Shown here in pieces: positions 5,544 to 22,149 of a stretch of 64,000 nt of DNA (position 1 is the first letter of the stretch; each line of letters opens with the position of its first letter). The stretch spans positions 1,131,988-1,195,987 of the forward strand of contig CAJFCJ010000005.1 in the NCBI GenBank assembly GCA_904063045.1. The letters run 5' to 3'. This DNA is from Dimorphilus gyrociliatus. Lineage: Eukaryota; Animalia; Annelida. The notes under the pieces were generated by a model. It was not told the origin of the DNA. It ran no database searches and saw only the letters and a list, made by a program, of their open reading frames with translations. Made by a program: the position numbers and the translations under genes.

Positions 5544-6818
5544 ATGGCCAAAGCTCCTTCGATCATATCAAAAAATGGACTAATTAAACGAATATCAACC
5601 GATCAGCGCGAAGACGTCTTATCTAGCTGCCCAAATTTATTCAATTCTGTTGAAGTTGAGCAGGAAAATCAGAATTTATCAAATGCAAACAATCAGTCGA
5701 ATAAGATGAATCAGCGGGAACGCTGCATTGGAACATCAATTGATATGTTTTTGGATTATAATGACTATCTGGACGAAGAAGAGAGAGCACTGACAGAATT
5801 TATTTTTGAAAAAGATAAGGCTAGAGTTAAGTTGGAATTTGAGAAACAATTAGATCATTTGAAAACTGCCACACAGACATTTTTCCGGGAGAAACGAGAC
5901 AAAGTTAAGGCGCTAAAAAATTCTCAAAAAAGATTAAGTCGAACAATTGAAGATAATCGAAAAGCTTGCAAACTATTCGTAGAACAAAATTTAATGATTC
6001 TTTTACGAAGTATTTCTTATACCCCGCAAGAATATTCAATGGGAAAACTTGAAATAACTGGAAAATTAGTAAAGCTAGTTATCATTTATCAATCCGAAAT
6101 GGCTAATTGTAAAGTTGTCAGGGGGATGTGTGTCAACAATAACGAAATATACATAATAAAATGGTCAAGTTTCCTCCCGACTACTTCCACAATTTGCATA
6201 TATAATTTAGCAGGCAGTTATGTACGAGATGTGAGCAAAACACAAGCAGAGCTTACGGCGATAGAATCGAAGGACAATGGACTCTTTTATGTTGCCGACA
6301 TGACGAATAATTGTATCATGCAGTCGAGAGATTGCAAAGAATTCGATCAACTGATAGAAGTCGAATATCCTCAAGGTATAGCCATTTGTTCAGATGGAAT
6401 TATAATTGCCTGCGACGATCCAAAAACATCTCATGAACATACTGTTAACATTTTTAAATATACTTTCGATGGAGATTTCATTTTCCATTACAAAGACAGA
6501 TGTCACTCCCTGTACAAAATTTGTTGTTCGGGATATAATTTAATATGTACTCATGATCACGACAACGAAATAATGGTTTTGGATACGGAAAAGAATCAAA
6601 AAACCAGATTGATTCTTGAGGAAGGCTATACTCCAATTGGAGTTTGCTCTTTACCAAACGGAGCTTTTGCGATTGCTAATCATAGTAAAATGAGCTTAAC
6701 AATTTATGATAACACAAGTTTGGAAATATGCGAACTGCAATTGAGTGAAAAACCAGTGCACCTAAGCTTTTATGAAAATGATTCGAACTACTATCTTGTT
6801 TGTTACGCAGTATATTGA
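5544..6818 (+). CDS. Uncharacterised intronless protein: N-terminal coiled coil plus C-terminal NHL-like beta-propeller
   Basis: 424-aa ORF. Helical heptad region at about aa 70-150, then repeats such as YPQGIAICSDGIIIAC and TPIGVCSLPNGAFAIAN that resemble NHL blades. Confidence 0.65.
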   Translation: MAKAPSIISKNGLIKRISTDQREDVLSSCPNLFNSVEVEQENQNLSNANNQSNKMNQRERCIGTSIDMFLDYNDYLDEEERALTEFIFEKDKARVKLEFEKQLDHLKTATQTFFREKRDKVKALKNSQKRLSRTIEDNRKACKLFVEQNLMILLRSISYTPQEYSMGKLEITGKLVKLVIIYQSEMANCKVVRGMCVNNNEIYIIKWSSFLPTTSTICIYNLAGSYVRDVSKTQAELTAIESKDNGLFYVADMTNNCIMQSRDCKEFDQLIEVEYPQGIAICSDGIIIACDDPKTSHEHTVNIFKYTFDGDFIFHYKDRCHSLYKICCSGYNLICTHDHDNEIMVLDTEKNQKTRLILEEGYTPIGVCSLPNGAFAIANHSKMSLTIYDNTSLEICELQLSEKPVHLSFYENDSNYYLVCYAVY

Positions 6819-7213
6819 AGTATGAGAATATTCATGTTTGAGTATTGGCTTCGTTACAATGCATGAATATGATAATTAAATAGAATATCTATATAAATAG
6901 ATATGTAAAGCCTTATTTTAAAAAAACTGTAGGAAAAACTCATTTTGTAATTATCCAATTTACCCGCTTCGAGTGACCATGACCCTTTTAGCATAATGAA
7001 ACCGATCTTAACCGGTGAAGAATTTTCGATTCCGTTTCCTGTACTCTAGAATCCAAATAAACTTAAAATTTCTAGAAACCTTCTGGTGCAATTTTTATAA
7101 ACAAGTACTGCTAATGTTTTAACTAAAATAAGGATATAACTCATAGGTAAGGATTGTGAGGATTCTGTGACAGAACGATTTAAGTATTTTTTCAACCACT
7201 ATTCAGAAAAATC

Positions 7214-18241: not shown

Positions 18242-20043
18242 ATGATCAATCGAATATCGTCGAAAGAAAACATTCCATGCGGAAATGACAAACCTCAAGC
18301 CGAAGTTCCAGAGAAAAGATTCAAGTCTGACTCTGGAAACGACGTTCCTCGAACCTTTAAAAATTTGAAGAAGGATAAGATCTATAAAAGAGGAAATTTC
18401 CTTGGAAAAGGAGGATTTGCGAGATGCTATGAAGCTACGCCAGTTCTGAACGGTCAAGTGTCGGCCCAGACTTTAGCTATTAAAGTAGTTCGCTTAGATA
18501 GATTGGCAAAGAAATTTCATCGGCAAAAAATGTATCAAGAAATTGAAATTCATAGCAAACTATCCCATCCAAATATTATTGGTTTTTATGAGAGTTTCAG
18601 TGATTCTCTTAATGTCTACATTGTACTAGAGTTGTGTAAAAGAAGAAGTTTAATGGAATTACAAAAAAGAAGGATAACAGTAACAGAGCCTGAGACTCGC
18701 TACTTCTCTTACCAAATTGCTCAGGGTTTGACCTATTTGCACGGACAAGGTATAATTCACCGAGATTTAAAATTGGGTAATATTCTTTTAAACGAAAATT
18801 TGGAAGTGAAGATTGGCGACTTTGGTCTTGCTACTCATAGTTGTCCTGGTCAAATGAGAAAGTCTCTTTGCGGAACACCAAATTATATTGCTCCTGAAAT
18901 TTTAAATCGTCAGGGTCATGACTTTAAAGTTGATTCGTGGTCCCTTGGTTGTGTTATTTATACCCTCCTTTTCGGTAAACCACCGTTCGAGAGATCGTCT
19001 TTAAAGGAAACTTATGAAAGTATTCAAGATCATAGATACTCCTTTCCCGATCGTCCTCAAGTTGGAGGGAATACTCGACGATTAATTAATCAACTCCTTT
19101 TAATGGATCCTTTACAAAGACTAGATATAAATGGCGTCCTGTGTCATACATTTTATACTTCAGGCTATCATCCCTCTTCTCTTCCCGACTCGTGCCTAAC
19201 TATTGAACCAAGGTTCGATCAAATCCAGTCTGAAGACGTTAAACTGGCGGGAAATATCTATTCGAAAACGATTGATTACCTGTCAGAGTTATTTGTTTTA
19301 TTAAATAAAGCAAAGAAGAGTCCAGTTCTTGAGGGTACCTGCGAAGAATTACAAAGTCCTGAAGATGCTCCAATATTTTGGCTGGCAAAATGGGTTGATT
19401 ACACTGACAAGTATGGATTTGGGGCAATGCTTTGTGATGGAAGTGTCTGTATTAAATTTAATGATAGCACCAGGTTAATAACAACTCGGAATTGCCGAAA
19501 TTTGCAATATGTAGACGCAAATAACAAGGAAGAGCTGTACACGATTAATAATTTTCCTCAGAAACTTAATAAGAAAGTGGTACTAGCAAAATATTTTAAA
19601 CGTTATATGGAATTTAACTTGAAGTCATCAGGTCCTAGGCGGGAAAACTCTGAAGCTAGTCAATTGTCAAGATTACCTTCGGTCAAGATGTGGTTTCGCA
19701 CACGGCGAACAACAGTATTCTACCTTAGCAATCACACATTTCAAGCAAATTTTAATGAAACACACGATAAGGTTAACGACTATATCTTCTTTAGTGCAGA
19801 TAACTAACAATAGCTCTTAACTATCTTTAGGTTATTCTCTGTCCTCTTCTGCAGTCTATCACTATAATAGATCAAGCAAATCTCGCAGAAACCTATAAAC
19901 TAAGTACAATCATTGACAATGGTTGCTGTACAAGAGTTTTGGAGCTTATTCGACACTGCGTGCCTCTCTTGGAACAATTTCTGAATATGAAGTCAAGATC
20001 AAGTATTAAGAGCGCCAAAAGTGTTTCAGTTCAAAGTACTTGA
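18242..20043 (+). CDS. PLK1: Polo-like kinase 1 (exons 18242-19771, 19831-20043)
   Basis: Kinase GKGGFARC, HRDLKLGN, DFGLA, LCGTPNYIAPE. Polo boxes WLAKWVDYTDKYGFG and WFRT..QANFNETHDK|VILCP. Confidence 0.95.
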
Positions 20044-20158: not shown

Positions 20159-20184
20159 TCACGTGAGTACAAAGGTCATGTGAC
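20159..20184 (+). promoter_or_regulatory. Two CLEAR/M-box-like E-boxes (TCACGTGA 20159-20166; GTCATGTGAC 20175-20184) upstream of the lysosomal glycosidase
   Basis: Direct motif matches to TFEB/MITF-family sites 20-45 bp before the ATG at 20203. Confidence 0.6.
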
Positions 20185-20202: not shown

Positions 20203-22149
20203 ATGAATTTGATATTCTATTTTGGTATTTTTGCATCATTTCTTGGCCTCCGAGCAGTTTTTGGCTTAGATAACGGCTTGGCTAGAACACCGCCAATGGG
20301 GTGGATATCATGGGAGAGATTTCGCTGCAATATAGACTGTACTGACGATCCTAACAACTGCATCAGCGAAAATCTTTACATGGAAATGGCTGATGTCTTA
20401 TCGACTGAAGGATACAGCAAAGTTGGCTATGAATATGTTAACATAGACGATTGCTGGTTGGAGAAAAAACGTGATGACGACGGTCGACTTGTTGCTGATC
20501 GTAAACGATTCCCTAGAGGAATTCGCTTTTTGGCTGATTATATGCATTCAAGACAATTAAAGTTAGGTATATATGAGGACTTTGGAGTGAAAACTTGTGC
20601 TGGTTATCCTGGTTCGGAATACTTCTTGCAAATGGACGCGCAAACATTTGCCGATTGGAAAGTGGATATGCTCAAATTAGACGGTTGCAATTCTCTACCA
20701 CAACAGATGGATGATGGTAATTAATCTTACGTCTTCAAATTTTCCTTTCTTTTTTAAAACTTTTAACATAGGCTATCCTCCAATTAACTTGTTTCTGAAT
20801 AAAACAAAAAGACCAATTTTATTATCGGTCGAATATCCTTTCTATCAGCTAGCTGTTCTAACAAAGGTATTCTGATGATTGTTTTGATTATTTTGATTTA
20901 TAGCCTACCCTGCCATGGCGTTTTGGCTGAACAGGACGGAAAGACCAATTTTATATTCGTGCAGTTGGCCAGCTTATCAAGAGAGTATTGTGGTATGCCG
21001 AACATAAAGAAAACTCCGCTATTGTCCTTTCAAAGTCATTTACAATTCCCTTTCGATTATTTAAGCAAAAGTTAATTTACTGATAAGCTTCCAATTATTA
21101 ACTGTTTTTACACAGCCAAACTATCCATTGCTAATTAGAAAGGCGAATTTGGCACGAAATTTCTTTGACATAGACGACAGCTGGGATAGTGTCAAATCAA
21201 TTATAGATTATTATGCTAGTGATATTTACAATGCTTCCAAATATGCTCAACCTGGTTTTTTTAATGACCCTGATCAGGTTTGAAAATTATTAAAGTATTT
21301 AAAAACGAAAAAAGAGAAAAGGGAATGAAAGTGATTGGGACAATCAGAGTTTTTTTACTCTACCTTTTCAAACTAATGAATACTTAACAGCCAAACTATA
21401 AAAGAATAGCAAAGTATTGCAACATCTGGAGGAATTATAATGATGTTGCTGATTCCTGGAGAAGTATTCTTAGCATTATAGAATTTTATGGCAAAAACAA
21501 GGGAAACTTTTCTCAAATTGCAAAACCAGGCTCATTCAATGATCCCGATATGGTAAACACACAAGCGTTTCAGATTTCCTAGTTTCTCTTTTTTCCTAGA
21601 AAAGATTGAATTTTAAAAGTCTATCTCTTTTTCTGATTTCAGCTCATTCTGGGAAATTTTGGCTTGAGTTATGATCAAGAAAGAGTACAAATGGCTATGT
21701 GGTGTATAATGGCATCACCACTTTTTATCTCGGCAGATTTAAGAAAAATTCGAGCATCGTCAAAAGAACTACTTCTAAACAAATATGCAATTAGCATAAA
21801 TCAGGATCCTTTGGGAATCCAAGGAACTTTAGTAGAAAAGGTTCAAAGTTGTAAAAAGTATAGAATCAGAAATAAAATGTTGATTTTCCAGAGAGGAGAT
21901 ATTCAAATCTGGCAAAAGGAACTGCAAACAAAAGGAAGTTTCGCTTTCGTATACTTAAAAACGGGAGACGATGGTATTCCATCCCGTGTTTCTTTTAAAA
22001 TGTCCAAGATGGGAGCGTTAGAAGACGTGCTTTATATGGTTTACGAAGTATTTGAAAATAAGTTTATAGGCCTTTGGAAAGGAAGTGAAAGTTTTGAAGC
22101 AGTTGTGAACCCAACTGGTGTATTTTTCGGGAAAGCATTTCCTGCTTAA
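20203..22149 (+). CDS. NAGA/GLA: GH27 lysosomal alpha-galactosidase / alpha-N-acetylgalactosaminidase with two mutually exclusive exon pairs (exon 1 20203-20716; A or B; C or D; final part 21643-22149 with a probable in-frame intron 21841-21891)
   Basis: Signal peptide, then [18 protein letters not shown], nucleophile LKLDGC, NDPD(M/Q)|LILGNFGL and [19 protein letters not shown]. Confidence 0.95.
20772..20866 (+). other. Alternative exon A of GH27 gene: (G)[31 protein letters not shown]
   Basis: AG acceptor 20770-20771, GT donor 20867, 95 nt, phase 1 to 0, open frame, paralogous to exon B. Confidence 0.85.
20904..20992 (+). other. Alternative exon B of GH27 gene: (A)[29 protein letters not shown]
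   Basis: AG acceptor 20902-20903, GT donor 20993, 89 nt, phase 1 to 0, canonical NAGA-type SCSWPAY. Confidence 0.9.
21116..21277 (+). other. Alternative exon C of GH27 gene: [23 protein letters not shown]...PGFFNDPDQ
   Basis: CAG acceptor, GT donor 21278, 162 nt, phase 0 to 0, open frame, acid/base Asp retained. Confidence 0.85.
21391..21552 (+). other. Alternative exon D of GH27 gene: [23 protein letters not shown]...PGSFNDPDM
   Basis: CAG acceptor, GT donor 21553, 162 nt (same length as C), phase 0 to 0. Confidence 0.9.

Follow-up and report, generated by a model that had tools for sequence, protein, structure and literature searches.

Probable coupled alternative splicing of two tandem exon pairs in a GH27 glycosidase gene of Dimorphilus gyrociliatus, with a possible galactose-type pocket in the minor isoform

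We analysed a 64,000-nucleotide (nt) stretch of the genome of the annelid Dimorphilus gyrociliatus (contig CAJFCJ010000005.1, positions 1,131,988 to 1,195,987 of the forward strand; hereafter the window), which is AT-rich (~33% G+C) and has very short introns. The gene under study, at 20203–22149 on the + strand, belongs to glycoside hydrolase family 27 (GH27), the family of α-galactosidase A (GLA) and α-N-acetylgalactosaminidase (NAGA). It has seven exon positions with AG/GT at every border, four of which form two tandem pairs, A/B and C/D. RNA-derived contigs join A to C and B to D, and we consider it highly probable that coupled, mutually exclusive alternative splicing of these exons is real. 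Our explanation of the locus as a whole, a coupled exon switch in which the A–C isoform would carry a galactose-type pocket, is one that we favour slightly.

Evidence for the splice paths came from near-identical sequence from the same organism, present as DNA in X4 and as RNA-derived sequence in X3 (2017), X5 and X6 (2020, project of X4); run X7 had no sequence of the gene. X4 carried the whole stretch of the gene in one 28.7-kb DNA contig without any difference. After correction for the cut offset, joints in the RNA contigs reproduced all of the predicted exon borders exactly. Exon 1 was joined to A in X6 (depth 24) and to B in X3, X5 and X6 (depths of 246, 63 and 67). From A, contigs continued into C with B skipped (X5, depth 15.4; the shorter flank covered 138 nt), and from C into E with D skipped (X3, 214; X6, 18.7). 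From B, they continued into D with C skipped (X3, 189; X5, 58; X6, 33), and from D into E (X3, 482; X5, 147; X6, 55). The E–F joint was present in X3, X5 and X6. Joints of A to B, B to C, A to D or C to D were found in none of X3, X5 and X6, although contigs drop rare forms and this absence is no proof. Because A–C and B–D joints were present and none of the crosswise or within-pair joints was seen, we conclude that A–C and B–D are most probably coupled, exclusive pairs. The constitutive D–E and E–F introns were essentially uncovered in the RNA contigs, and therefore the joints did not derive from genomic DNA. By junction depth, the A–C path amounted to ~21–31% of the B–D path, or between about a fifth and a quarter of the joints, so that on this rough estimate B–D is the major isoform and A–C the minor one.

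An earlier reading of the window, made from the letters alone (the sequence-only reading), had described the region spanned exactly by exons A and B (20772–20992) as two tandem, open paralogous exons with identical phases, 1 to 0, and had proposed that they are mutually exclusive. Both statements stand: the AG/GT borders, the shared Pfam positions and the RNA joints agree with the first, and the contigs of X3, X5 and X6, in which exon 1 was joined to A and to B and A never to B, agree with the second. The same reading had looked to RNA for the exon 1–A and exon 1–B junctions and took a lack of transcripts containing exon A as evidence to the contrary; both junctions were present in the RNA contigs. 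The second pair, C/D, is added here.

Membership of the gene product in GH27, and in the animal GLA/NAGA type of Pfam Melibiase_2, is secure, as judged from the catalytic barrel, which matched PF16499, and from the C-terminal domain, which matched PF17450. Exon 1 encodes the equivalents of W47, D92, D93, Y134, C142, K168, D170 and C172, with the nucleophile, the D170 equivalent, in a KLDGC motif; after the signal peptide, the N-terminus presumably resembles those of GLA and NAGA. The product is predicted to be a secreted or lysosomal glycosidase, a point covered by the slight preference that we give to the explanation as a whole. Exons A and B are paralogous, with 14 of 26 aligned residues identical, and the peptide of each cross-matched the other exon type in a related species (tblastn E of 6e-6 and 3e-7). 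Both pairs have the hallmarks of tandem duplication, being adjacent and homologous, with equal phase and similar length. When spliced in silico, A–C, B–D, A–D and B–C all gave open frames of 406–408 residues.

Substrate specificity of the two human enzymes follows a known rule, in which E203 and L206 of GLA are contrasted with S188 and A191 of NAGA (PMC8791529). Exon B, with the loop YSCSWPAY, has Ser and Ala at both specificity positions and retains the C202-equivalent Cys; it aligned with NAGA structures of chicken and human (1ktb, 3h53) and with 3lx9, the engineered E203S/L206A variant of GLA. Exon A reads LSVEYPFY and has no Cys; its specificity positions hold Glu and Phe, and Val and Tyr replace C202 and W204. 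The structure alignments thus bore out the earlier assignment of the Glu/Phe of A to GLA E203/L206 and of the Ser/Ala of B to NAGA S188/A191. Among natural animal GH27 enzymes in a representative set, Phe was the commonest partner of a loop Glu (6 of 11 Glu-type loops). Exon D is canonical (YCNIWRN...DSW...NDPDM), includes the C223 equivalent and matched GLA and NAGA chains at E 1e-13. Exon C (KANLARN...DIDDSW...NDPDQ) keeps the equivalents of R227, D231 and D266, with Ala replacing both C223 and W226. The acid/base D231 equivalent is present in both isoforms, as FFDIDDSW of C and YNDVADSW of D align with the DIDDSW of GLA, and the nucleophile in exon 1 is common to both. Overall, about half of the ~85 swapped residues differ between A–C and B–D.

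The C202–C223 disulfide connects the two exon choices. Its cysteine pair was present in 77 of 87 sampled animal-type loops, and in A–C both cysteines are gone together, one through A and one through C. That A goes with C makes sense at the protein level because both bridge cysteines are replaced (by Val and Ala), and hybrid combinations would carry an unpaired cysteine. Isoform B–D has the sequence features of the NAGA type, Ser/Ala plus the Cys pair, and would be an ordinary α-N-acetylgalactosaminidase-type enzyme in which the bridge ties the specificity loop to the strand bearing the acid/base Asp. Isoform A–C has the Glu and bulky hydrophobic residue of α-galactosidase A, with Phe rather than the human Leu. 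It keeps every catalytic and sugar-binding residue and would place Glu and Phe at the positions that gate the N-acetyl group. Our model predicts that A–C is most likely a further enzyme whose pocket is closed and of the galactose type, and which would cleave α-galactosides but not α-linked N-acetylgalactosamine (α-GalNAc). For a strictly galactose-restricted A–C enzyme, we put the chances at about even.

Conservation was assessed against a relative (P0151) that an exon 1 query retrieved and whose exon 1 protein is 70% identical; the collections searched contained no other close relative. Its locus lies on Logan contigs from four runs (L001–L004) that are 99.9% identical to one another, and it is syntenic, with the same polo-like kinase (PLK) gene upstream (PLK protein 86% identical). 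The relative has a counterpart of each alternative exon (A', B', C' and D'), arranged as in the window, so that the check in a related species suggested by the sequence-only reading found the exon duplication there. It has also retained the Glu...Phe of A together with the Ser...Ala of B. Where the ratio of nonsynonymous to synonymous substitution rates (dN/dS) was computed, dS was 1.3–1.7 (Table 1). Since dN/dS of A and C is 0.05–0.08, as in constitutive exons, we conclude that A and C have been maintained as protein-coding sequence under constraint no weaker than that on the constitutive exons. The value for A, 0.05, also answers the earlier concern that this exon might not be under purifying selection.

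Table 1. Features of the GH27 gene in the window and their conservation in the relative
Feature	Position	Strand	Description	Nucleotide identity to relative	dN/dS
Conserved upstream element TCACGTGAGTACAAAGGTCATGTGAC	20159–20184 (26 nt)	+	Two E-box/CLEAR-like motifs, 19 nt before ATG		
Exon 1	20203–20716	+	Signal peptide; ends in phase 1; Melibiase_2 positions 1–137, E 6e-71	71%	Not computable (dS saturated)
Exon A, alternative, minor	20772–20866 (95 nt)	+	Phase 1 to 0; Melibiase_2 positions 146–171, E 0.064	79%	0.05
A–B intron	20867–20903 (37 nt)	+	37 nt in the relative too		
Exon B, alternative, major	20904–20992 (89 nt)	+	Phase 1 to 0; Melibiase_2 positions 146–171, E 3e-6	67%	Not computable (dS saturated)
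B–C intron arm of candidate RNA duplex bracketing exon C	21025–21054	+	From RNAduplex		
Exon C, alternative, partner of A	21116–21277 (162 nt)	+	Phase 0 to 0; Melibiase_2 positions 176–229, E 3e-11	77%	0.08 (last 41 codons)
C–D intron conserved block	21307–21341	+	GA-rich GAAAAAAGAGAAA (21307–21319), then candidate duplex arm (21317–21341)		
Exon D, alternative, partner of B	21391–21552 (162 nt)	+	Phase 0 to 0; Melibiase_2 positions 176–229, E 7e-18	78%	0.08
Exon E, constitutive	21643–21840	+	Melibiase_2 positions 230–284, E 3e-21	81%	0.05
Exon F, constitutive	21892–22149	+	C-terminal beta-sandwich and stop codon; Melibiase_2_C, E 2e-6		
Introns				60–67%; C–D intron 74.5%, best conserved	

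The A' and C' exons of the relative have each undergone a small deletion. A' (L001 6575–6664) lacks 5 nt at its 3' end and therefore ends in phase 1, and C' (L001 6913–7073) has a 1-nt deletion about 37 nt into the exon. These losses sum to 6 nt, so that the reading frame returns immediately upstream of the conserved RNFFDIDD. At the standard splice sites A'–C' encounters a stop codon; the AG that directly follows it lies 27 nt into C', has the phase required and would open the frame, although its pyrimidine tract is weak. In the relative, the A–C isoform either persists by use of this shifted acceptor or disappeared only very recently; with dN/dS this low, neutral decay can have had little time.

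To place the exon pairs within the family, a tree was built from the swapped segment together with 94 other GH27 sequences. The A–C segments of both species formed one clade (Shimodaira–Hasegawa-like approximate likelihood-ratio support, SH-aLRT, of 100), and its nearest neighbours were the B–D segments of the same two species. A grouping of all four was not rejected (approximately unbiased test, p-AU 0.61). The stem branch of the A–C clade is long and its tips are short. Because of this shape and the B–D neighbours, the tree indicates a lineage-specific exon duplication followed by fast change and then by constraint. An origin of A–C from a separate Glu-type clade with the signature CEWPFY...DPDQL was rejected, as A–C grouped with the B–D of its own species; the D' exon of the relative also ends in DPDQ. 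By sequence, then, A–C is a diverged duplicate of B–D rather than a GLA orthologue, and it probably works like an α-galactosidase without being a GLA. In our model, the two internal exons would each have been duplicated in tandem in the ancestor of this species and the relative, with exon 1 now joining either A or B, and C following A and D following B.

The exon arrangement was not found beyond these two species at three other eukaryotic loci with small introns (L006, L008 and L009), each of which is single-copy for these exons. One of the three is a metagenomic eukaryote in which two complete GH27 genes lie in tandem (L006 3996–6700; L007 3649–6353), the first with a GLA-type loop (YSCEWPLY) and the second with a NAGA-type loop (FSCSWPAY). 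Here the same two loop types occur at one locus as complete genes and not as alternative exons. These two tandem whole genes show that the contrast between Glu-type and Ser-type loops is usually achieved by gene duplication.

How A and B might exclude each other is suggested by the dimensions of the locus. The spliced introns of the gene are 51–398 nt long, and the intron between A and B is shorter than all of them. In addition, joining A to B would shift the frame, as A ends in phase 0 and B needs phase 1. Exclusion would probably result from steric hindrance at an intron too short for splicing, together with the frameshift that A–B joining would cause. Exons C and D are both in frame and are separated by a 113-nt intron, and this pair therefore needs another exclusion mechanism. 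One candidate is an RNA duplex between conserved blocks in the introns on either side of exon C. RNAduplex gave –20.3 kcal/mol for its two arms in the window (Table 1) and –24.0 kcal/mol for 6818–6843 with 7116–7142 in the relative, and the z-scores of the whole-intron B–C/C–D duplex against shuffles were –3.4 and –2.65, respectively, in a comparison of these two species only. By looping out exon C, this stem would favour joining of B to D. That one gene yields both a galactose-only enzyme and a GalNAc/galactose enzyme, with their linkage enforced at the RNA level by the short intron and this pairing, is a proposal that we make tentatively and to which we give rather less than even weight.

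Two other pairings were considered and rejected. Pairing of the GA-rich element of the C–D intron with the pyrimidine tract of the D–E intron was not above shuffles (z of –0.6 and –1.0), and pairing between the A–B and C–D introns, which was strong in the window (z –4.0), was absent in the relative (z 0.1). The GA-rich element GAAAAAAGAGAAA is itself conserved in the relative and may be a splicing enhancer.

Several findings weigh against the coupled switch as we describe it. The junction depths on which the two paths are ranked come from the assembler and are a poor measure of expression. On no single contig was the whole path from exon 1 through A and C to E represented; the contigs that contain A run into unspliced flanking introns. 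Exon A was also absent from the 2017 transcriptome X3, although a hole in coverage proves nothing. In the relative, the A'–C' reading runs into a TGA at the standard splice sites, and this was the same in all four runs. At the protein level, A–C departs from α-galactosidase A at the C202–C223 disulfide, W204 and W226, where it has Val, Ala, Tyr and Ala. A search with exon A alone returned no solved structure at E values up to 10, and A–C is further from other GH27 enzymes than B–D is (about 45% versus 55%). About half of the swapped residues differ between A–C and B–D. With the bridge gone and W204Y and W226A added, the pocket could have taken a different shape, and a rule based on two residues may not hold for A–C.

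These departures are also the basis of the strongest alternative, namely that A–C is a real, selected isoform whose switch concerns something other than galactose versus GalNAc, such as stability or pH optimum once the disulfide is gone, recognition of the aglycone or of a larger glycan, oligomerisation, or sugar binding with only weak catalysis. The extent of the exon swap, which at 86 residues reaches well beyond the two specificity positions, would fit such a role, as would the loss of a disulfide pair that most animal-type loops retain and the changes of W204 to Tyr and W226 to Ala. A branch that is long and then slow after duplication fits a new function of any kind. Moreover, NAGA-type enzymes already cleave α-galactosides (PMC8791529), and the need for a galactose-only form is not obvious. 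However, the catalytic and binding residues are all kept, and the Glu and Phe of A fall exactly at the N-acetyl gating positions, a pair that the relative retains and that is met again elsewhere in separate Glu-type paralogues. We consider a different function of this kind unlikely.

A second alternative is that the A–C path is mainly unproductive or regulatory, with stop-containing RNAs that lower B–D output and with A and C as decaying frames. Intron retention in the RNA contigs was confined to the alternative region, where contigs read from A through the intron into B, from B through the intron (20993–21115) into C, from C through the intron (21278–21390) into D, and through part of the exon 1–A intron. 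Every one of these retained introns begins with an in-frame stop codon, and the abundance of such contigs beside A and C fits this alternative, as do the stop at the A'–C' junction of the relative after its two deletions and the presence in X3 of C–E joints without exon A. However, dN/dS of 0.05–0.08 on A and C at saturated dS requires translation over most of the divergence time, and all four exon combinations are open in the window. The deletions in the relative, for their part, are compensatory in frame, and the stop is directly followed by an AG in phase. An unproductive A–C path thus appears quite improbable to us. As to the depth of the retained forms, in X3 the contig running from B through the intron into C had a depth of 391, more than that of the B–D joint (189).

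A third alternative, that the arrangement is an artefact of assembly duplication, collapsed paralogues or chimeric contigs, is scarcely credible: nothing was found in its favour except that the joints are those of de Bruijn contigs, which are able to join molecules that were never one, whereas the 28.7-kb DNA contig agrees with the window throughout, the order A', B', C', D' recurs in four runs of the relative, and all joints fall at predicted GT..AG borders.

The element upstream of the gene, TCACGTGAGTACAA..GTCATGTGAC, has two halves, which we take to resemble the E-box/CLEAR motif of TFEB/MITF at lysosomal genes. A counterpart of TCACGTGAGTACAAAGGTCATGTGAC with three differing positions precedes the gene of the relative (L001 5943–5968), where the spacer has otherwise diverged. 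Directly upstream on the same strand of the window lies the polo-like kinase gene (18242–19807), which has an open first exon of 521 codons. The relative keeps this neighbour and has a MyoD-like basic helix-loop-helix gene further upstream (L001 1814–2326). Annelid proteins, at 44–47%, were the best named matches to PLK. Pieces of the GH27 gene (20633–20777 and 21778–22085) were found at 95–99% identity in a coral metatranscriptome (X2) and a marine metatranscriptome (X1). One of these pieces is spliced from E to F and has four differences, and therefore samples of this type contain a close strain or species.

Mutually exclusive tandem exons that alter the handling of a ligand or substrate are known from FGFR2 (IIIb/IIIc), PKM (exons 9/10) and the insect CPT1 and MRP genes. 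The present gene shares with these systems adjacent, homologous exons of equal phase, one per transcript. It differs from them in that two clusters would be chosen in a linked way that matches a co-varying disulfide pair, and in that the product would be a lysosomal glycosidase. Exclusion by an intron that is too short is known from exons 2/3 of α-tropomyosin, to which the A–B intron, with its conserved length, may be likened. Exclusion by competing or looping intronic RNA pairing occurs in Dscam, 14-3-3 xi and MRP1, and the candidate duplex between the introns flanking exon C, conserved in two species only, would be of that kind. Switches between exons that change how a protein binds or catalyses are thus a known kind of arrangement. 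Full-text literature searches found no description of mutually exclusive or alternative active-site exons in GLA, NAGA or GH27, and for this family we found no published account of such a switch.

Human GLA and NAGA, and their engineered interconversion (3lx9), have the fold and family of the present enzyme and differ at the same two loop positions. In vertebrates the two enzymes are separate genes, whereas here the contrast lies in two exon sets of one gene, with Phe in place of Leu and without the C202–C223 disulfide. Single invertebrate genes that serve both substrates are established in Caenorhabditis elegans, where the single NAGA-type gene gana-1 has both α-galactosidase and α-GalNAc activities (PMC548690, PMC8791529), and in Schistosoma, where SmNAGAL is likewise a single NAGA-type gene with both (PMC8791529). 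The gene described here resembles these as one invertebrate Melibiase_2 gene that, to judge from its sequence, would serve both substrates. In gana-1 and SmNAGAL, both activities reside in a single protein whose pocket is of the Ser/Ala type, and alternative active-site exons are not described there. The sequence-only reading had further proposed that one locus does the work that vertebrates divide between GLA and NAGA. This was overstated, as NAGA-type enzymes such as gana-1 already cleave both substrates and the A'–C' frame of the relative is interrupted at standard sites.

If our explanation is correct, the gene would be a splice-level equivalent of the vertebrate duplication that gave GLA and NAGA, two disease-linked lysosomal enzymes that serve as the textbook example of specificity determined by a pair of residues. 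The practical weight of the finding is limited, as it concerns a small marine invertebrate and an activity difference predicted from residues. The same contrast nevertheless appears to be packaged here in alternative exons, and the locus would allow re-gating of the pocket, with Glu and Phe and without the disulfide, to be studied as it has arisen in nature. It is also a compact case, under 1 kb, of two apparently linked exon clusters, and because the sequence itself displays a protein-level reason for the linkage in the form of the co-varying cysteine pair, it may offer a tractable system for coordinated splicing.

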